Sequence record: NC_048047.1
Length of the DNA: 64,000 nt
Strand: one strand, 5' to 3'
Every line of letters begins with the position of its first letter. Positions within the stretch are counted from its first letter, which is position 1. The notes below the pieces were generated by a model, which made no database searches, had not been told where the DNA came from, and saw nothing but the letters and a program-made list of their open reading frames with translations. Positions 3,483 to 12,845 of this stretch are shown here, in pieces. The position numbers and the translations under genes are program-made.

Positions 3483-5375
3483 ATGGGCTGGCTTTACCCC
3501 CAATACGACCAAGAACCGGCGCCTGAGCCGCGTGAGTACACCGAAGCCGAGGCGCTCGCCGCGCGGACCCGCATGGAGGAAGCCCGTGTGGAACGCGCCG
3601 AGGAAATCCTGGACTGGCTGACGAACGGCCCCAACCATCATCGCCCTAGCGAAGCTGAAGTCGCCGCTGCTGAGACCCCTTCGGTGGAAGACGCCCCGCG
3701 CAAGGTCAAGCTCGAAGGCCTGACCCTCACCGAACTCGCCTCCCTGGCGCACACCGAAATCCTCGCCCTGGTCAAGAAGGCCGGCGGCCAGCGTGCCTTT
3801 GCACGCAAGACCGGTATCCCGCGCACCACACTGCAAGGCTACCTCAACAAGTCCCGCGAGGACCCGTTCGGCCACCGCCCCGCCCCCGAGCCGGTCGAGA
3901 TGATCACCGACTTTGGTCCGGCGATGCGTCGTGTGGTGCGTCGGTTCATCCTGACCTCGGCCCAGGACGGCACCAAGGTCCACGAGCCGTTCCTACGCAA
4001 CCTGGAGGCCTATGTCTCCTACCTCAACACGGACGAGGGCGACACCTGCGAACTCTTCGTCGCCGGCTTCACCTACAACAAGTCGCTGTTCGAAGATCAC
4101 TCCAAGCAGAAGGTCTTCTGGCCTGAGTCGATCAAGAAGTACATGCGCGACGAGCGCCTGCGCTTCAACGATCGCGTCGACTTCTGCGCCGAGATGAACA
4201 CCCTGCCGACCGCCGTCTCGCCGCTCTCGGGCTTCGATGGCTACACCCATGACAAGTGGGGCATCTTCCCCCATCCCAAGGTGCAGTTGGTCTCGGTGCC
4301 GACCATGGCCCACAAGCCGGCCAAGATGAACATGACCACCGGCGCGGTGACCATGCCCAACTATGTGCCCAAGAAGGCCGGGCTCAAGGCGGCGTTCCAC
4401 CACATCATCGGCGCGGTGATCCTGGAGATGGACGTGCGTGGCCGGTTCTTCTGCCGCCACCTGATCGCCGACGAGGCCGATGGCAGCTTCTACGATCTGG
4501 ACCGCTTCGTCTTCGACGGCGAGGTCACCACGGGCCATCGCGCCCGCGCCCTGACCCCCGGCGACGTCCACGTCTTCCAGATCGATCCGATGGTCTCGGC
4601 CGTCACCTTCGGCATGTCGCCGACGACGATCGAGCATGAGGAACACGGCCGCGTCTGGGAAGCGACCGATCAGGTCTCGATCGTCGATCGCCTGCGCCCC
4701 GAGTATCTCTTCATCCACGACGTGTGTGACTTCAGGGTTCGCAACCACCACTCGATCGCCGACCCGCTCGATCGCTTCCGCCTGTTCGTCGACGGCACCG
4801 AGTCGGTCGAGGACGAGTTGAAGGAGGTGGCGTTCTTCCTGTCGACCGTGGGCCGCGAGGACATGCAGACCGTGGTGGTCGAGAGCAACCACGATCTGGC
4901 GCTCAAGAAGTGGCTCAACACCGCCGACTACCGCCATGACCCGGTCAACGCCCTTTTCTTCCTGCGCTGCCAGACGGCCTCCTACGAGGCTGTGGCCAAC
5001 CGCGTCGATCACTTCTCGATCTTCGAGCACGTGATGAAGACGTCGTTCGCCGAGTACGACTGCCAGGACGTCGTCTTTCTGCGTGAGGACGACACCTTCG
5101 TGGTCGACGGCGTCGAGATGGCCAACCACGGCCACAACGGAGCCAACGGCTCTCGCGGCAACATCAAGCAGTTCTCCAAGGTCGCCTCCAAGGTGACGAT
5201 CGGGCACTCGCACTCGGCCGGCATCAACGACGGCGCGGTCCAGACCGGGACCTCGACCAAGATGAAGCTCGGCTACAACAAGGGGCCGGGCTCCTGGTCC
5301 TGGTCGCATGCGCTCCAATACCAGAACGGCAAGCGCACCTTGCTGACCATCCAAGACGGCCTCGCCTATCTGTGA
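3483..5375 (+). CDS. HTH plus calcineurin-like metallophosphoesterase phage protein
   Basis: 'GDVH', 'HDVCD', 'ESNHD', 'NHGH', 'GHSH' motifs in order; N-terminal HTH-like 'GGQRAFARKTGIPRTTLQGYL'. Confidence 0.65.
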   Translation: MGWLYPQYDQEPAPEPREYTEAEALAARTRMEEARVERAEEILDWLTNGPNHHRPSEAEVAAAETPSVEDAPRKVKLEGLTLTELASLAHTEILALVKKAGGQRAFARKTGIPRTTLQGYLNKSREDPFGHRPAPEPVEMITDFGPAMRRVVRRFILTSAQDGTKVHEPFLRNLEAYVSYLNTDEGDTCELFVAGFTYNKSLFEDHSKQKVFWPESIKKYMRDERLRFNDRVDFCAEMNTLPTAVSPLSGFDGYTHDKWGIFPHPKVQLVSVPTMAHKPAKMNMTTGAVTMPNYVPKKAGLKAAFHHIIGAVILEMDVRGRFFCRHLIADEADGSFYDLDRFVFDGEVTTGHRARALTPGDVHVFQIDPMVSAVTFGMSPTTIEHEEHGRVWEATDQVSIVDRLRPEYLFIHDVCDFRVRNHHSIADPLDRFRLFVDGTESVEDELKEVAFFLSTVGREDMQTVVVESNHDLALKKWLNTADYRHDPVNALFFLRCQTASYEAVANRVDHFSIFEHVMKTSFAEYDCQDVVFLREDDTFVVDGVEMANHGHNGANGSRGNIKQFSKVASKVTIGHSHSAGINDGAVQTGTSTKMKLGYNKGPGSWSWSHALQYQNGKRTLLTIQDGLAYL

Positions 5376-6522: not shown

Positions 6523-8799
6523 ATGAAACTGCGCCGCCGCCGGCTCATCTGGGACATCGAAACCGATGGCCTGCTTCACGAACTGACTCGCGTTCACGTC
6601 CTGACGATCCGCGACATCGACACCCGGCAGACCTACATCTTCCGCCGCAACGACGTGATGGACAACATCCGCGACGGCCTGAAGATGCTCAACGAGGCTG
6701 ACCTGATCGTTGGCCACAACATCATCGGGTTCGACAACTACGCGCTGTGGAAGGTCTACGGCGACGAGTACAATCCCCAAGGCACCATGCGCGACACGCT
6801 GATCATGTCGCGCATGCTCTACTCGCAGATCAAGGACGACGACTTCCGCCTGTGGAAGCGCGGTACCCTGCCCGGCGAGTATATCGGCAGCCACACCCTG
6901 GGCGCCTGGGGCGCCCGTCTGGGCTTTCCCAAGGACGATTACGCCGCCCGTCGCAAGGCCGAGGCGACCGAGAACTGGCAGACGGTCTGGGGTCTGCCCG
7001 ACCAGTTCGACAACAACCTGAAGTCCTACATCCACTGGTACACCTGGGCCAACTGGAACCAGGACATGGAAGACTACGGCGCCCAGGACCTGGACCCGAC
7101 TGAGGCCTTGTGGCTGAAGATGGAAAAGGTCGAGTGGTCCGAGGACGCCACGATCCTGGAGCACATGATCTGCGACCTGATGGCGCGGGTCGAGCAGAAC
7201 GGCATCAATTTCGACCGTACCCTGGCCCTCCAGATGGAGGCCGAACTTCGCGCCGAGTATGACGCCAAGACCAAGGAAGCTATCGAGCACTTCGGCAAGT
7301 GGTTCACCGCCACCAAGTGGCGCAAGGGCGAGCCGCCGCGTCACGAGTACGGCGAGGACGACAGTCGTTTGAACTGGGGCGAGGTCACCGTCCCCAAGCG
7401 GTCGATCAAGTTCAAGGACCCCATGTCCAAGGGCGGCGACAAGACCGAAGGCTGCGCCTACTGCCCGATCGTTCTGAAGGAGTTCAACCCCAACTCGCGT
7501 CCCATGATCGTCAACCGGTTGGAGACGATCTACGAGTGGGTGCCGGAGCGCTTCACCGAGAAGAACACGCCCATCGTCGACGACGAGGTGCTGCGTAACC
7601 TTGGCCTGACGATCCCGATTTGCGTCGAACTGGCCGAAATCTTCTACTACAAGAAGCGCCTGGGCCAGCTAGCCGATGGCGCGGAGTCCTGGCTGCACAA
7701 CTGCGATGACGAAGGTCGCATCCACGCCCGGATCAATCCGGGCGGCACGGTGACAAACCGGGCCAGCCACTCCAAGCCCAACATCGCCCAGGTCCCCCGC
7801 GTCGTCTACAAGAAGCTCCTGCAATGGCAGGAGGAAAACGTCACGATCCGCTGGATCGGTGGCAAGATCGCCTACGGCGTCGAGAAGATCGACAAGCGCT
7901 CCGGCGAGAAGTTCTACGACCAGAACCTCACGCCGCTGCTCGATCCCGATGGTCAGCAGTTCGTCGGCGTGCCCGTACGCGACAAGGAGACCGGCGAGTA
8001 CGTCCTGGACCGCGACGGCACGATCAAGACCAAGCCGACCCTGCTGAAGGGCCGCGCCGGCGATCACGGCTGGGACAGCCGCAATCTCTTCATGGTGCCC
8101 GAAGGATGGGTGCTGATGGGCGCCGACCAGAAGGGGATCGAGCTTCGCGCCCTGGCCCACTTCATGTGGGAGTTCGATGACGGCGAATATGCCCAAATCC
8201 TGCTCGAAGCCGACATCCACGACGCCCACACCGCCGCCATGGGCCTGGACTCGCGGGACAAGGCCAAGACGTTCATTTACGCGATGATCTACGGGGCGCA
8301 GGACTTCAAGCTCGGGGTCACCATCGACCCGACGCTCGAAAACTACCCCACCAAGGCCAAGGCCCTGGGCGCCCAGATGCGCGAGCGTCTGATGTCCAGA
8401 TATCCCGCCTTGCGTAAGCTGATCAAGTCGGTGCAGCGCACGGCCAAGAAGGGCTATGTCGACGCCCTGGATGGACGTCAACTGTTCGTCCGGGCCAAGC
8501 ACAGCGCGCTCAACACCCTGCTGCAAGGCGCGGGCGCGACCCTGGCCAAAATCTGGTGCGTCTCGTTCGAGTCGTTCATGGAAGAGGCCGGCTTCAAGCA
8601 TGGTTGGGATGGCGATTTCGTCATCCTGGCGTGGATTCACGACGAACTCCAGGTCGCCGTGCGTGACGATCCGGCCGTCAAGATCGCCGCAGAGCGCTAC
8701 ATCACCGAGGCCGCCACCTACTCCGGCGAGCGCGTCAATTTCCGCCTGCCGGTCGAGATCGACGTCAAGTGGGGCACGCGCTGGAGCCATACCCACTAA
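6523..8799 (+). CDS. DNA polymerase family A, T7-like, with 3'-5' exonuclease
   Basis: ExoI 'WDIETDG', ExoII 'GHNIIGFD', motif A 'DQKGIELR', B 'KTFIYAMIYG', C 'IHDELQ'. Confidence 0.97.
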   Translation: MKLRRRRLIWDIETDGLLHELTRVHVLTIRDIDTRQTYIFRRNDVMDNIRDGLKMLNEADLIVGHNIIGFDNYALWKVYGDEYNPQGTMRDTLIMSRMLYSQIKDDDFRLWKRGTLPGEYIGSHTLGAWGARLGFPKDDYAARRKAEATENWQTVWGLPDQFDNNLKSYIHWYTWANWNQDMEDYGAQDLDPTEALWLKMEKVEWSEDATILEHMICDLMARVEQNGINFDRTLALQMEAELRAEYDAKTKEAIEHFGKWFTATKWRKGEPPRHEYGEDDSRLNWGEVTVPKRSIKFKDPMSKGGDKTEGCAYCPIVLKEFNPNSRPMIVNRLETIYEWVPERFTEKNTPIVDDEVLRNLGLTIPICVELAEIFYYKKRLGQLADGAESWLHNCDDEGRIHARINPGGTVTNRASHSKPNIAQVPRVVYKKLLQWQEENVTIRWIGGKIAYGVEKIDKRSGEKFYDQNLTPLLDPDGQQFVGVPVRDKETGEYVLDRDGTIKTKPTLLKGRAGDHGWDSRNLFMVPEGWVLMGADQKGIELRALAHFMWEFDDGEYAQILLEADIHDAHTAAMGLDSRDKAKTFIYAMIYGAQDFKLGVTIDPTLENYPTKAKALGAQMRERLMSRYPALRKLIKSVQRTAKKGYVDALDGRQLFVRAKHSALNTLLQGAGATLAKIWCVSFESFMEEAGFKHGWDGDFVILAWIHDELQVAVRDDPAVKIAAERYITEAATYSGERVNFRLPVEIDVKWGTRWSHTH

Positions 8800-8814
8800 G
8801 GCTTCGTGGCGCCA

Positions 8815-8843
8815 AAAATATCCTGTGACGCAATTCTTGACAC
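8815..8843 (+). promoter_or_regulatory. GTGACG-N4-TCTTGACA promoter class (representative copy)
   Basis: 28/29-nt identity with 33333-33361; related copies at 2787, 5372, 16356, 19006 and 30761-30777 (- strand). Confidence 0.75.
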
Positions 8844-8893
8844 CGTCTCAGGCCTCCTCTATTAACCATGACAACGGGAAGGGGCTGACGCCC

Positions 8894-9253
8894 ATGACCA
8901 CCAACTCCACCACCAGCAAGCCGGAATTCTTGGCGGCCAACCCCGCCACGGCAAACCTCTTCGACATCGCCCGTGTCGGTGCGCCCTTGCTGGTGCTCGG
9001 TGCGGCTGTCTCGATCTTCGCGGCGCTGCTCACCTTGGGCCTGCACGCCTGGGTCAACCCCTCCATCCCTGTCGTGGGCTTTGGACCCGCCGCGTTCTTC
9101 GCGGCCGTCCTGGTCCTCTACATCAGCCTGCAAAGCCTGATCGCCTCGACGCTGCTGAGCGTCCTGGGCGTGGCCGGCGAAGTCATGGCTGCCGGGGAGC
9201 AGGCCAGAACCGTGTCGTCGGAAGACGTCAAGAAGTTCTTGAGCCTTCGCTGA
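8894..9253 (+). CDS. Hypothetical membrane protein (2-3 TM)
   Basis: Long hydrophobic stretches; promoter directly upstream. Confidence 0.6.
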   Translation: MTTNSTTSKPEFLAANPATANLFDIARVGAPLLVLGAAVSIFAALLTLGLHAWVNPSIPVVGFGPAAFFAAVLVLYISLQSLIASTLLSVLGVAGEVMAAGEQARTVSSEDVKKFLSLR

Positions 9254-9312
9254 TCGGCGACGCCGATCGGTCACGAACAATCGCCAAGTCTAAGTCCAAT
9301 CGAAGGCTAAGT

Positions 9313-9900
9313 ATGCTCCTCTTTTTCGACACCGAAACCACGGGCCTGTGGAACAAAGGCCTGCCGATGGGCTCGCCCGAGCAGCCCAAGATCGTCCAGA
9401 TCGCCGCCCTCCTGACCGAGGATGACGGCACCGAGGTTCAGAGCCTGAACTTCATCGTCCGCCAGGACCACGTGCCCGAAAAGGCCGCCGCCGTCCACGG
9501 CATCACCACCGACGTCTCCCAGCGCCTGGGCCTCAACGAGGGCACCGTCCTCACCGTGTTCGAGGAACTGCTGATGCTGGCCGACGTCGTCGTCGCCCAC
9601 AACGACGAGTACGATCGTCAGGTCGTCCTCAACGCCATCGCCCTGATCGACCAGAAGATTTCCGACCCGTTCGCGGGCAAGAAGGCCTTCTGCACGATGA
9701 AGGCCTCCACGCCGATCTGCAAGATCAAGGGGCCGCGCGGCTACAAGTGGCCCAAGCTGATCGAGGCCCACCAAATCCTCCTCGGCGAAGGCTTCGACGG
9801 CGCCCACGACGCCCTGGCCGACGTCCGCGCCTGCAAGCGCGTCTTCTTCAAGCTCCAGGAAATCATCGCCGAGCGCATCGCTGCGCAGAAGGCCGCCTGA
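9313..9900 (+). CDS. DEDDh 3'-5' exonuclease (DnaQ-like)
   Basis: 'FFDTETTG', 'AHNDEYD', 'AHDALADV'. Confidence 0.92.
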   Translation: MLLFFDTETTGLWNKGLPMGSPEQPKIVQIAALLTEDDGTEVQSLNFIVRQDHVPEKAAAVHGITTDVSQRLGLNEGTVLTVFEELLMLADVVVAHNDEYDRQVVLNAIALIDQKISDPFAGKKAFCTMKASTPICKIKGPRGYKWPKLIEAHQILLGEGFDGAHDALADVRACKRVFFKLQEIIAERIAAQKAA

Positions 9901-10001
9901 TGCCCTGGTTCATGGTCATCACGATCATGATCGGCGTCACCTGGATGATCCTGCCGCCGGGCGGGGACCCGCCCAACAACTCTGGCCTCGCGCCTGTTTA
10001 A
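9900..10001 (+). CDS. Small membrane peptide (33 aa)
   Basis: TGATG coupling to upstream stop; hydrophobic 'MPWFMVITIMIGVTWMIL'. Confidence 0.45.
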   Translation: MPWFMVITIMIGVTWMILPPGGDPPNNSGLAPV

Positions 10002-10010
10002 GACCTCCAT

Positions 10011-11102
10011 ATGACCGCTATCAACTTCGCCAAGGGCTTCGACGAATATGTCGCCGCCCACCAAAAGAAGTGGCGTCACGACCGCTCTAAGAGCGTGGGC
10101 GCGTCCGAAGCCTTCGGGTGCCTGCGCAAGGCGTGGTTTGGCAAGCACAACACGCCCAAGGATCGCAACCACAAGGACGACTGGGGCGCCCTCAAGCGCG
10201 GCGACGTGATGGAGGAGCACTGGGTCGAGCCGGTCGTCAAGTGGTACCTGGACCAGCTTCCCGGCAACGTGCGGCTGATCTGGGGCGGCAAGCATCAGCG
10301 CACCTTGGTCGGCAAGACCGCGCCGGCTTCGGCCACGCCGGACGGGCTCATCATCGACGCGGATGATGACGCCCTGGCGCTCTACGGTATTCCGAGCCTT
10401 GGCGGTACGGGATGCTTCAATTTCGAAATCAAGTCCATCGATCCGAGAGTAAATCTCAAGGAAGAGAAGGGCATCCATCGCGGTCAGACGATCATGCAGA
10501 TGGGACTCACTCGTGAGTTGACTTCGTATCGCCCGAACTATGCTCTGATCATCTACGTAGATGCGTCGTTTTACAGCGACATGAACTTCTACGTGATCCC
10601 GTTCAGCCAAGAAACCTTCGAGGCGGGCAAAGAGCGCGCCAAGCAGGCCTTCGAGGTCAAGAGCGTCGCCGACATCTTCCCGGAAGGCAAGCTGGACGGC
10701 TCGTGCGACTACTGCCCCTACACCACCGCCTGTTCGGTCGCCAATGGCGAGGCCACCCCGACCGACGGCGTCACGACGGAGACGAACACCCCGTCCCCGA
10801 TCGTCAAGGAATTCGAGGACCTGATTTTCCTGGAGCGAGAGCTTTCGGCGGAGAAGAAGGTCGCGGAGAAGGCCCACAAGGAGGCCCAGGAACGGCTCAA
10901 AGAGCTTTTCCGAGAGGTCGGCACCCGGCGTTTCCAAGTCGGAGACATCAAGGCGTCGATCACCTGGAACAAGGGCAAAAAGTCCTTGGACCGTAAGGCT
11001 ATGGAAGAAGACGGCATCGACCTGTCTCCCTACGAAAAGGAAGGCAATGGTTTCGACACCCTGCGGATCACCGAAAAGGGGTCCGGGGTCGACGACACCT
11101 AA
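10011..11102 (+). CDS. Cas4/RecB-like PD-(D/E)XK exonuclease
   Basis: 'TPDGL', 'FEIKS', 'GQTIMQM' and Cys cluster 'C...CDYCPY..AC'. Confidence 0.75.
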   Translation: MTAINFAKGFDEYVAAHQKKWRHDRSKSVGASEAFGCLRKAWFGKHNTPKDRNHKDDWGALKRGDVMEEHWVEPVVKWYLDQLPGNVRLIWGGKHQRTLVGKTAPASATPDGLIIDADDDALALYGIPSLGGTGCFNFEIKSIDPRVNLKEEKGIHRGQTIMQMGLTRELTSYRPNYALIIYVDASFYSDMNFYVIPFSQETFEAGKERAKQAFEVKSVADIFPEGKLDGSCDYCPYTTACSVANGEATPTDGVTTETNTPSPIVKEFEDLIFLERELSAEKKVAEKAHKEAQERLKELFREVGTRRFQVGDIKASITWNKGKKSLDRKAMEEDGIDLSPYEKEGNGFDTLRITEKGSGVDDT

Positions 11103-11106
11103 CGCG

Positions 11107-11320
11107 TAAGAGCACGGTAAGCGTACTCTAAGCTAAGCCAAGCTAATCCCAGACTAATGTCACGGTAAGCTAAGCCAAAGCTACGTCTAAGACCATCTAC
11201 GATAAGAACAAGTCCAAGCCAAAGCTAAGACTGCACTAAGCCTAAGACGAAGGCACCTCCACCAAAATTTAAGACCACCCTGCCGGCGGCATGTCGCCGC
11301 CGGCCAATCCCAAGGATAAG
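11107..11320 (+). repeat. Cluster of 13 same-strand TAAG motifs in the leader of the SSB-like gene
   Basis: TAAG counted by eye at 11107, 11118, 11129, 11134, 11166, 11171, 11188, 11203, 11226, 11237, 11243, 11270, 11317; CACGGTAAGC twice. Confidence 0.85.
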
Positions 11321-11321
11321 T

Positions 11322-12176
11322 ATGTCCACCCAACTCACCACCACCTCGTCGAGCTTCATCGCGGCCACCGACGACGCCTTCGCCCTGCTGTCGGAAGTCG
11401 CCAATGAAATGGGCGGCGGCTCGGGCGTCTTCCTGAAGTTCAACGGCAATGACGGCCTGTTCACCTACGGCGCCACCGGCGACGAACTGCCCCTGGGCTC
11501 GCAACTGGCCTTCAACGGCATGTCGCTGGAACGCGGCTGGATTTGCTGGAAGGACGAAGAAGTCGTCGGCGAGGAGATGGTCTCGTTCCTGACCGGCAAG
11601 CCGAAGGACAAGAGCCAACTGCCCGACAACGGCCCCTACGAGTCCAACCAGGACGGCTGGCAGGAGCAGATGGCGGTCACCTTCAAGATGACCGAGGCCC
11701 CGTTCCACGAACTGTCGTTCAAGGCCACCGGCGTGACCAAGCTGAACGCCGTCAAGCGGCTGGTCCAGGACTACATCAAGTCGATGAAGGCCAATCCGGG
11801 CCTGATCCCGATCGTCGAGATCGATGAGACCGAGTTCGAGTCCAAGGCCAAGGGCGCCCGTGGCGCGCGCAAGCACGCCCCGGTCTTCAAGATCGTGGCC
11901 TGGGTCACCGAGCAGCAACTGCTGGACGCCCAAGAAGGCGCTGAAGGCGAGTACGAGGCCGAGCCGGAACCCGCGCCGGCGCCGAAGGCCCTGGCCGCCC
12001 CGAAGGCTGCTGCTGCCGCCAAGCCGGCCGCTCGCCGCGCTGCGCCGGCTCCCGAGCCGGAACCGGTGGCTGAAGAAGACGACGCCGGCGCCTACGAAGA
12101 CGAGGCCGAAGCCGAACCGGCCCCCGCGCCGGCGCCGAACCCGCGTCAAGCCGCCGCCCGTCGCGGTCGCTTCTAG
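11322..12176 (+). CDS. Putative single-stranded DNA-binding protein
   Basis: Aromatic beta-rich core, very acidic Ala/Pro tail ending in Phe, located among replication genes. Confidence 0.6.
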   Translation: MSTQLTTTSSSFIAATDDAFALLSEVANEMGGGSGVFLKFNGNDGLFTYGATGDELPLGSQLAFNGMSLERGWICWKDEEVVGEEMVSFLTGKPKDKSQLPDNGPYESNQDGWQEQMAVTFKMTEAPFHELSFKATGVTKLNAVKRLVQDYIKSMKANPGLIPIVEIDETEFESKAKGARGARKHAPVFKIVAWVTEQQLLDAQEGAEGEYEAEPEPAPAPKALAAPKAAAAAKPAARRAAPAPEPEPVAEEDDAGAYEDEAEAEPAPAPAPNPRQAAARRGRF

Positions 12177-12199
12177 GCCTTAGCGCCCACTACCCCGAA

Positions 12200-12230
12200 G
12201 GCCCGTCCACTCCGGTGGACGGGCCACCTT
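12200..12230 (+). terminator. Hairpin terminator
   Basis: GGCCCGTCCAC-tccg-GTGGACGGGCC after the SSB stop; weak U-tract. Confidence 0.6.
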
Positions 12231-12260
12231 CTACCCCGACAATTTGAAGAGAGGACTCCC

Positions 12261-12845
12261 ATGACGACGTTCGTGGCGTTTCCCAAGATCGCGCGTCTGA
12301 ACCGCGAGATCGTGATCACCGAAAAGCTCGACGGCACCAACGCCCAGGTCGAGATCAACGATGCTGGCGACGATATCGTCTCGGCCGGCTCGCGTAACCG
12401 CTACATCACCCCCGAGATGGACAACCACGGCTTTGCGCGCTGGGTGCGCGACAACCGTGACGAACTGATCAAGCTCGGGCCGGGCCGCCACTACGGTGAA
12501 TGGTGGGGCAACGGCATCCAGCACGGCTACGGCCTGGGCAAGGGCGACAAGCGCTTCTCCCTCTTCAACGTCAGCCGCTGGGAAGACCCCGAGACGCGCC
12601 CGGCCTGCTGCGGCGTCGTGCCGGTCCTCTACCGTGGCCTGTTTTCGGAAGACGCCATCCAGGCTGCTGTCGAACGCCTGCGCACCGAAGGTTCGGTCGC
12701 CGCGCCCGGCTGGATGCGCCCCGAAGGCGTCATCGTCTATCACACCGCTGCTGGCACCCTCTTCAAGGTCACCCTGGAGAAGGACGCCGCGCCCAAGTCC
12801 ACCTACGACGCCGAGCACGCGGCGCGCATCGCCCAGGCGGCCTAG
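12261..12845 (+). CDS. RNA ligase, Rnl2-like nucleotidyltransferase domain
   Basis: Motif I 'EKLDGTN', 'GEWWG', motif IV 'EGVIV', motif V 'FKV'. Confidence 0.8.
   Translation: MTTFVAFPKIARLNREIVITEKLDGTNAQVEINDAGDDIVSAGSRNRYITPEMDNHGFARWVRDNRDELIKLGPGRHYGEWWGNGIQHGYGLGKGDKRFSLFNVSRWEDPETRPACCGVVPVLYRGLFSEDAIQAAVERLRTEGSVAAPGWMRPEGVIVYHTAAGTLFKVTLEKDAAPKSTYDAEHAARIAQAA

Follow-up and report, generated by a model that had tools for sequence, protein, structure and literature searches.

A UA(A)G-rich leader 5' of a candidate SSB gene is maintained among relatives of the Caulobacter jumbo phage CcrBL9 and may act as an RNA-level operator

Introduction

What does a dense array of one short motif, carried on the coding strand only, do directly in front of a gene in the replication gene cluster of a jumbo phage? 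This question is raised by the Caulobacter phage CcrBL9 (NC_048047.1; genome of 322 kb), of which we analysed one stretch of 64 kb, referred to here as the window (genome 124001-188000, + strand). Positions below are those of the window unless genome positions are named. The element, which we call the leader, occupies 11103-11321 (genome 135103-135321), the intergenic gap between gp510 (10011-11102) and gp509 (11322-12176). A sequence-only reading of the window had offered two explanations for it, a gp32-like autogenous operator of SSB translation on the one hand and an iteron-like replication origin or primase start zone on the other.

That an SSB can control its own synthesis through the leader of its mRNA is textbook knowledge, drawn mainly from T4-type phages, and a second, independently built example in phages of high-GC alphaproteobacteria would tell whether such control is of general use. 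The periodic UAG core of such a leader would also provide a clean, mutable target for studying how a non-specific nucleic-acid binder selects one RNA. The phiCbK-like phages are standard Caulobacter tools, and our analysis indicates both their missing SSB, misannotated as a nucleotidyltransferase in many records, and a conserved control element 5' of its gene.

Gene context and transcription unit

The replication gene cluster has the order T7-like DNA polymerase, DEDD exonuclease, gp510, gp509, RNA ligase and Dda-like helicase. Around the leader, we recognised the following features:

8825-8842, + strand: promoter-like motif GTGACG-NN-ATTC-TTGACA 5' of gp512, with 8 copies in the window against 0.01 expected
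10011-11102, + strand: gp510, a RecE/Cas4-like PD-(D/E)XK exonuclease (phrog_434, E 3e-38; weaker Cas4-type matches)
12200-12225, + strand: hairpin 3' of the SSB gene, lacking a T-run in CcrBL9 and represented in RB23 by a canonical T-run terminator

The TTGACA...TTAAC layout of the motif at 8825-8842 is also present in CcrColossus and phiCbK. Judged by its sequence, this motif likely marks the start of a unit comprising gp512, the DEDD exonuclease, the RecE-like exonuclease and the SSB, for which it would serve as promoter. Scanning 8700-12400 for E. coli-type promoters and terminators returned neither a promoter nor a + strand terminator in the leader. Since the nearest clear promoter-like motif is the one at 8825-8842, the SSB gene probably stands fourth in a transcription unit that starts near gp512, and the leader would be transcribed within a polycistronic mRNA. 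The end of the unit is probably marked by the hairpin at 12200-12225; in RB23, the unit closes at the canonical terminator directly 3' of the SSB gene. The many canonical terminators of CcrBL9 are built as AAGGCCCGCC...GGCGGGCCTT and then a T-run. Among public sequencing runs, none contained the CcrBL9 leader and none was an RNA run of this phage, and four metagenome runs yielded scattered short contigs of relatives, none of them across 11019-11339.

gp509 is the best candidate for the phage SSB

The gene that follows the leader encodes a protein of the following kind:

11322-12176, + strand: gp509, 284 aa, SSB-like OB-fold in an AlphaFold2 model, with a disordered, partly acidic C-terminal tail whose last residue is Phe

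In public records, gp509 is annotated as a "nucleotidyltransferase", and its sole family match is a PHROG of the same label. Single-sequence and profile searches against Pfam and PDB gave no match, and gp509 has no sequence similarity to gp32. The AlphaFold2 model, built on 18 homologues, consists of a core (residues 33-205, pLDDT about 90) with a disordered N-terminus and a long disordered tail. Among solved structures, phiC31 gp3 matches the model best (9teh chain I; Z 8.6 across 147 aligned residues, rmsd 4.4), with a Foldseek E value of 1.6e-4. Further matches are the BRCA2 OB (Z 5.5), T4 gp32 (4.7) and RB69 gp32 (4.5), with many SSBs and RPA or telomere OB folds below them. The TG1 homologue of gp3, TG1 RDF, binds ssDNA and not dsDNA, adopts a gp32-like fold and has been compared with BRCA2 and gp32 (PMC11795197). 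phiC31 also shares the gene order of exonuclease, small gene and gp3. The nearest named Atlas cluster to gp509 is Gp3-like, only at 0.84, which we take as a lead. No Pfam match was obtained between gp509 and the Gp3-like family PF18897, a weak test given that the control search with PF18897 also found nothing anywhere.

The Pfam families of SSB, gp32, Enc34-type and Gp3-like proteins were without match in the CcrBL9 genome, and the founding genome paper on phiCbK-like phages detected no SSB (Gill et al. 2012, PMC3556154). The match of the modelled fold, the absence of other SSB families and the gene context together make gp509 the best candidate for the phage SSB. The sequence-only reading, which had called this gene SSB-like, was therefore right at the level of the fold, against the annotation as a nucleotidyltransferase. 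Likeness to gp32 itself is confined to that level (Z 4.5-4.7).

The leader of the candidate SSB gene

The leader and the start of gp509 comprise the following parts:

11103-11281, + strand: unstructured A/C-rich array; 12 of the 13 UAAG motifs lie here, each followed by A or C and mostly preceded by C (from motif positions and RNA folding)
11159-11187, + strand: best-conserved block of the leader, unchanged among CcrBL9, CcrSC and RB23; possible weak host RpoD-type promoter (GTCACGG, 14 nt, GCTACGTC)
11282-11304, + strand: stable hairpin (-20.7 kcal/mol), stem of 9 bp, all G-C, loop of 5 nt, no T-run on either strand, 17 nt 5' of ATG
11305-11324, + strand: translation initiation region with CAAUCCC, the Shine-Dalgarno sequence AAGGA (11312-11316), the 13th UAAG (11317-11320) and AUG (11322-11324)

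TAAG occurs 13 times on the + strand of 11103-11321 (starts at 11107, 11118, 11129, 11134, 11166, 11171, 11188, 11203, 11226, 11237, 11243, 11270 and 11317) and not once on the - strand, which confirms the count and strand given earlier for this A-rich non-coding stretch of about 220 nt. The whole 64-kb window holds 93 copies on both strands together. No part of the genome has a denser cluster of TAAG than the leader, where 13 copies fall within 220 nt; the runners-up have 8 and 5, and the cluster of 8 is a different repeat, TAAGGTTAAC, in the terminal repeat. Density on the + strand is about 59 per kb in the leader against 2.4 per kb in other non-coding DNA, in agreement with the earlier estimate that fewer than one copy would be expected. 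The base preceding the motif is C in seven copies (4 CTAAGC, 3 CTAAGA), G in three, A in two and T in one, and the base following it is A or C in 12 of 13 and G in none. The one longer sequence that had been described as repeated is indeed found twice, as CACGGTAAGC at 11113 and 11161. Motif spacings are 5, 6 and 11 nt and multiples of these, a decayed run of CTAAG pentamers is detectable at 11128-11146, and the longest imperfect repeats measure 23-27 nt at 63-78% identity. With A at 0.34, the leader has the highest A content of all genome gaps of at least 120 nt.

How strong the motif excess appears depends on the background. Dinucleotide shuffles of each leader mostly absorb it (z 0.4-3.1) because they preserve the counts of TA, AA and AG, and the TAAG excess is clear only against the genome and intergenic background. 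Runs of at least three UA(A)G at 5-7 nt spacing number 4 in the genome and 4 in shuffles; without enrichment, no wide regulon was found. No other gene of CcrBL9, structural genes included, has a comparable leader.

As + strand RNA, the 176-nt repeat part folds at a minimum free energy of -35.0 kcal/mol, compared with a mean of -65.8 +/- 9.4 for 1704 non-overlapping genome windows of the same length, none of which folds more weakly (0/1704). The - strand of the same part is ordinary (-53.8 kcal/mol), and the other very weakly folding genome windows lie inside coding regions. Set against its own dinucleotide shuffles, the repeat part is not less structured and if anything slightly more so (z -1.6), so that its openness comes from base composition, with A and C abundant and G and U scarce.

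The hairpin arms at 11282-11290 and 11296-11304 form G-C pairs at nine of nine positions. The GC hairpin that had been placed at 11282-11303 thus stands, with its end shifted by one base to 11304. It is ruled out as an intrinsic terminator, having no T-run on either strand, in contrast to the phage's own terminators. The 13th UAAG sits between the Shine-Dalgarno sequence and AUG. An Rfam scan of 10800-11600 at a permissive threshold returned two chance-level matches only and no family. By eye, no pseudoknot was found, a structure that the fold tool does not model; the leader instead has the simple 9-bp hairpin, 3' of most of the repeats.

Leaders of related phages

We compared 13 leaders from three named genera and from unclassified and metagenomic phages. 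They share a common design in which UA(A)G motifs, mostly 6 nt apart, flank a hairpin of about -20 kcal/mol on either side and run up to the start codon. The repeat unit differs between lineages as follows:

Bertelyvirus: CUAAG(C/A)
Colossusvirus: CUAGAA
CcrColossus and CcrPW: CTAGAA, TTAGA
Shapirovirus: CCUAG
phiCbK-type: CCTAG, TCTAAG
Several uncultured relatives: CTAG, ATAG, TTAG
Brevundimonas phages: UUAGNN, with 32 motifs in 274 nt in Gurke

When the 13 leaders are pooled, the modal distance between motifs is 6 nt, and 5-7 nt separate the motifs in 52 of 118 cases, compared with 26.8 +/- 4.1 under random motif placement, where 0 of 2000 trials reach 52. Spacer bases vary across leaders and the motif core is retained. 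At least one UA(A)G lies between hairpin and AUG in 11 of the 12 lineages examined, and the Brevundimonas phage Domovoi has four hexamers directly 5' of AUG.

In each lineage, a GC hairpin with a stability of -20 to -23.5 kcal/mol is located 17-40 nt 5' of AUG, and the position of this hairpin follows AUG and not the upstream stop codon. From one lineage to another, the stems have unrelated sequences and remain paired. G.U pairs occur in these hairpins only when they are read as + strand (three in the relative L010 and one each in L014, L015 and L054); on the - strand, the same positions would be A.C mismatches. Compensatory changes are seen between phiCbK and its close relative L015. RNAalifold found no consensus in a MAFFT alignment of 12 leaders, in which the stems were misaligned, and the hairpins were for this reason compared case by case, which is not a formal covariation test. 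The leaders of nine relatives, hairpin included, are among the least structured segments of their own loci.

Within the genus of CcrBL9, the leaders of CcrSC and RB23 can be aligned with that of CcrBL9; their stems are identical, their loops differ, and each has 11 TAAG. Leader identity to CcrBL9 is 0.86 for CcrSC and 0.67 for RB23, while identity at four-fold synonymous sites of the flanking genes is 0.83-0.89 and 0.62-0.78, respectively. Six of the 13 TAAG positions are shared with RB23, which has new copies elsewhere. The exact sequence of the leader drifts at about the rate of synonymous sites and its motif content is maintained, so that any constraint would act on motif content and not on position. 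In the syntenic comparison proposed with the sequence-only reading, motif cluster and hairpin design are kept across genera in changed sequence. We conclude that the leader is a real, strongly non-random and evolutionarily maintained feature.

A UAG array is not a general trait of the genes of gp3-like SSBs, since the leader of phiC31 gene 3 consists of a terminator and a promoter and has no UAG repeats.

Proposed function of the leader

The location of all motifs on the coding strand, the G.U pairs of the hairpin and its compensatory changes point to an element that acts as RNA on the + strand, and this element most likely serves to control SSB synthesis post-transcriptionally. Given that its anatomy is closest to that of the T4 gene 32 operator, we tentatively favour the view that the leader is an RNA-level operator for SSB translation, most likely serving SSB autoregulation as in T4 gene 32. 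While ssDNA is plentiful, SSB would reside on DNA and the open A-rich initiation region would be translated well. Once ssDNA is saturated, free SSB would bind cooperatively to the leader, the least structured RNA of the phage, with the hairpin and the repeated motifs supplying binding specificity or a starting point. The bound protein would then cover the Shine-Dalgarno sequence and AUG and shut off its own translation, as T4 gp32 does. For gp32, low structure of the leader was reportedly proposed as the source of target specificity by von Hippel et al. in 1982. We infer both that a protein binds the leader and that this protein is SSB. A filament of SSB with a site size close to 6 nt could be the binder, as could a different protein.

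The T4 gene 32 operator consists of a folded element followed by more than 40 nt of less structured RNA that contain UUAAA/UAAA repeats and the ribosome-binding site (PMC535899). The leader described here is similar in that it belongs to the SSB's own gene and overlaps the ribosome-binding site, combines a folded element with a long unstructured stretch of short UAA-containing repeats, and precedes a gene whose predicted product has a gp32-like OB-fold. However, the T4 operator has a pseudoknot 5' of its unstructured region where the present leader has a plain GC hairpin, most repeats lie 3' of the folded element in T4 and 5' of it here, the motif is UUAAA/UAAA in the former and UA(A)G at a spacing of about 6 nt in the latter, and leader length is about 70 nt in T4 compared with 110-270 nt in these phages. 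The element is thus a variant of the gp32-type operator and not a member of that family. The earlier proposal of a gp32-like autogenous operator is partly supported, as the SSB-type OB-fold, the least structured RNA, the stable folded element with repeats reaching the ribosome-binding site and the preserved design all fit it. Autoregulation by SSB is further opposed by the very stable hairpin 3' of most repeats, an obstacle that a protein filament would have to pass or melt as it spreads, by the plain form of that hairpin, and by the periodic sequence-specific motif, which a non-specific SSB does not need and which could equally indicate another RNA-binding protein.

The main rival makes use of the same anatomy and dispenses with SSB feedback. 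The leader would be an intercistronic module for processing, stability and translation, in which RNase E cuts the A-rich run and so parts the SSB message from that of the exonuclease 5' of it, the hairpin, then close to the new 5' end, protects the SSB mRNA and the A-rich start, largely free of a Shine-Dalgarno sequence, acts as a standby or enhancer site for high-rate synthesis of an SSB required in quantity or, in a variant, another phage or host protein reads UA(A)G; we regard this as possible, if on the unlikely side. Intercistronic stabiliser hairpins and processing sites are known from the Rhodobacter puf operon, E. coli papBA and processed T4 gene 32 transcripts. The leader resembles puf/papBA-type elements in its stable hairpin without a U-run, placed between two genes of a unit beside an open A-rich stretch accessible to RNase E, and such an arrangement would permit different levels of two co-transcribed genes. 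A module of this kind is consistent with the extreme lack of structure in the leader, with a hairpin tied to AUG and not to the upstream stop, and with the absence of a promoter consensus, which fits a need for post-transcriptional uncoupling. It also accords with the A-rich start regions without a clear Shine-Dalgarno sequence in many relatives and with the distant relatives L037-L051, which retain only the hairpin and the 24-30 nt before AUG. However, neither an enhancer nor an RNase E entry site needs a 6-nt periodic UAG core kept across genera, puf/papBA-type elements have no periodic array of short motifs, and the restriction of such a leader to this one phage gene argues against a general high-expression device. 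A periodic, sequence-specific motif would suit the dedicated RNA-binding protein of the variant better than a non-specific SSB, but no TRAP or HutP homologue was found in the phage (PF02081 and PF09021, searched in the CcrBL9 genome only). By analogy with those two proteins, the UA(A)G arrays could represent a sequence-specific RNA operator not yet described in phages, in which each subunit of an oligomer or filament, covering about 6 nt, reads one UAG, the reader being a gp3-like SSB with gained RNA specificity or an unknown phage or Caulobacterales protein; this we consider unlikely. Bacillus TRAP reads (G/U)AG repeats with spacers of 2-3 nt, and HutP reads UAG repeats with spacers of 4 nt. 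Their leaders are similar to the present ones in having many UAG-type triplets on one strand of an mRNA leader, with a period of 5-7 nt and variable spacers, and in repeats that adjoin a hairpin and overlap the translation start. The TRAP/HutP-type pattern calls for at least six (G/U)AG at regular spacers of 2-4 nt, and the spacings pooled over the 13 leaders agree with it, with CcrBL9 itself carrying UAAG and being less regular. Unlike in TRAP/HutP leaders, the hairpin here is not a terminator or antiterminator (no T-run) and the Bertelyvirus motif is UAAG; to our knowledge, neither protein is known in alphaproteobacteria, the hosts of these phages. If correct, this analogy would imply a small post-transcriptional regulon in phiCbK-like jumbo phages, comprising the SSB, the DEDD exonuclease and perhaps gp558.

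Control at the level of transcription appears improbable, be it through an internal host-type promoter in 11159-11187, with the repeats as -10-like or pause elements, or through a Rho-dependent attenuator that would govern read-through into the SSB gene. The conserved block is similar to the RpoD consensus of Caulobacter given in PMC8144410, with one mismatch to GCTANAWC, and some distant relatives have a clear TTGACA or TATAAT promoter directly 5' of the SSB gene. The -35 part of the block, however, matches at only 5/7 positions, and a promoter there, proposed from the consensus match, is speculative. An array of -10-like promoter elements was rejected, as only 2 of 13 repeat units are within one mismatch of the -10 consensus, which is itself common by chance in coding DNA. 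The leaders of CcrBL9 and phiCbK are C-rich, G-poor, untranslated and unstructured, like Rho loading sites, but G exceeds C in the leaders of Gurke, L011, L014 and L054, so that this composition is not general. Moreover, the motifs reach within 5 nt of AUG, where promoter or pause elements would make little sense. It is very improbable that the leader lacks a specific function and is a spacer grown by replication slippage of pentamers or hexamers, its hairpin being a remnant or a weak structure at a transcript end. A short tandem run of CTAAG does remain visible, and identity between relatives at synonymous-site level, with motif turnover that leaves 6 of 13 copies in RB23, would agree with such an origin. 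Yet motif number is steady at 13, 11 and 11 despite this turnover, the same design recurs with different units across genera whose SSBs are only 40-50% identical, the UAG core is kept while spacer bases vary, and hairpin stability stays at -20 to -23.5 kcal/mol while stem sequences change. Least probable of all, to the point of being hardly credible, is action as DNA in the form of an iteron-like origin or a one-strand primase start zone, the second explanation of the sequence-only reading. In its favour, the leader lies within the replication gene cluster in the locally lowest-GC stretch (about 0.50), shares with iteron-type plasmid and phage origins the clustering of direct repeats in non-coding DNA inside such a cluster, and carries, in its one-strand repeats, CTA, a trinucleotide that some bacterial primases use. 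Iteron-type origins, however, have repeats of 17-22 bp; the units of 4-6 nt found here are too short for double-strand iterons, and no initiator gene is adjacent. An AT-rich unwinding element is missing, as 200-nt GC never falls below about 0.49-0.50, and cumulative GC skew follows gene orientation only, with no turn at 135 kb, which is weak evidence because many phages have no replication skew. The motif also differs between genera with conserved replication proteins, and the element always abuts the SSB start codon and has a hairpin in which G.U is tolerated on the coding strand only. Within the genome, the TTAAC arrays of the terminal repeat and the gap at genome 291.1-291.7 kb look more origin-like. 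The short one-strand units, the missing unwinding element, the absent skew turn and the + strand-only G.U pairs together speak against the origin or primase zone that had been suggested.

A similar start context at the DEDD exonuclease gene

Within the same probable transcription unit, the DEDD exonuclease gene has a small counterpart of the SSB leader:

9254-9312, + strand: short leader of the DEDD (RNase T-type) exonuclease gene with a small hairpin and two CTAAG; start context CCAATC..AAGG-N-TAAGT-ATG, as at the SSB gene

The 13-nt start context AAGG-N-TAAGTATG has exactly two copies in the genome, one at the start of the DEDD exonuclease gene and one at the start of gp509, and the start context that had been described as common to these two genes is accordingly found nowhere else. 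The small TAAG patch noted earlier at 9290-9311 corresponds to copies at 9291 and 9308. If the leader of gp509 is an operator of SSB translation, as we tentatively favour, the DEDD exonuclease gene may be co-regulated with the SSB gene. The start context of the DEDD exonuclease gene is conserved in RB23, where it is accompanied by 3 TAAG.

Promoter-like motif class

The motif GTGACG-NN-ATTC-TTGACA occurs eight times across the whole window, against 0.01 copies expected, with one copy ahead of gp512, the probable first gene of the SSB unit (window 8825).

Copies of the GTGACG-NN-ATTC-TTGACA motif (window positions)
2787, + strand
5372, + strand
5403, - strand
8825, + strand, ahead of gp512
16376, - strand
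19006, + strand
30760, - strand
33343, + strand

A TTAAC-type element lies about 17 nt 3' of the motif, and the same arrangement of TTGACA motif and TTAAC element is found upstream of replication genes of CcrColossus and phiCbK, relatives from other genera. The motif probably represents an early or middle promoter class of the phage, with an upstream factor site.

Annotation of gp509 and gp511

Two genes of the putative SSB unit carry public labels that appear to be erroneous. The product of gp509 (window 11322-12176), labelled 'nucleotidyltransferase' or 'polyribonucleotide nucleotidyltransferase', is predicted by its structural model to be an OB-fold SSB. Upstream, gp511 (window 9313-9900) encodes a 195-aa RNase T/DEDD exonuclease and is publicly annotated as 'DNA polymerase III alpha subunit'.

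UA(A)G leaders and associated elements

The untranslated UA(A)G-repeat leader preceding the SSB gene takes its most extreme form in two Brevundimonas phages. In Gurke (L058 177-450), 32 UA(A)G motifs within 274 nt flank the hairpin both 5' and 3', most of them being UUAG with a hexamer period, and in Domovoi (L057 242-447) the hairpin is duplicated in tandem and followed by (UUAGNN)x4 and then the AUG. Directly 3' of the leader hairpin, most lineages carry a C-rich stretch of a few nucleotides (AAUCCC, AACCCC or CCCCUC; window 11305-11311 in CcrBL9), which is also present in distant lineages that lack the UA(A)G repeats.

Beyond the SSB gene, the hairpin of RB23, a relative from the same genus, is a canonical T-run terminator (L003 about 3880-3915), whereas its CcrBL9 counterpart (window 12200-12225) has lost the T-run. 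Judging from this difference, transcription past the hairpin into the RNA ligase gene may differ between these close relatives.

Other repeat-bearing regions of the CcrBL9 genome

Further UA(A)G runs lie outside the window. The small gene gp558, just past two tRNA genes, has (TAAGNN)x3 immediately ahead of its AUG (genome 78603-78619), and four UA(A)G motifs spaced 5-7 nt apart occupy an A-rich gap near 90.6 kb (genome 90614-90636). Whatever factor recognises the SSB leader may also target both.

Also outside the window, a 600-nt gap (genome 291076-291675) exceeds its surroundings in A and T content and contains ATAA 15 times and CATA ten times; it resembles an origin more closely than the SSB leader does. 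The terminal repeat, likewise outside the window, includes a 1.4-kb non-coding stretch (genome 1463-2917, copy at about 301.5-302.9 kb) with eight occurrences of TAAGGTTAAC, long GGGTTAACCTTAA...TTAAGGTTAACCC-type palindromes and, within these elements, CtrA-box-like TTAA-N7-TTAA sites. CtrA-site clusters of this class have already been published for phiCbK-like phages (PMC9437464).
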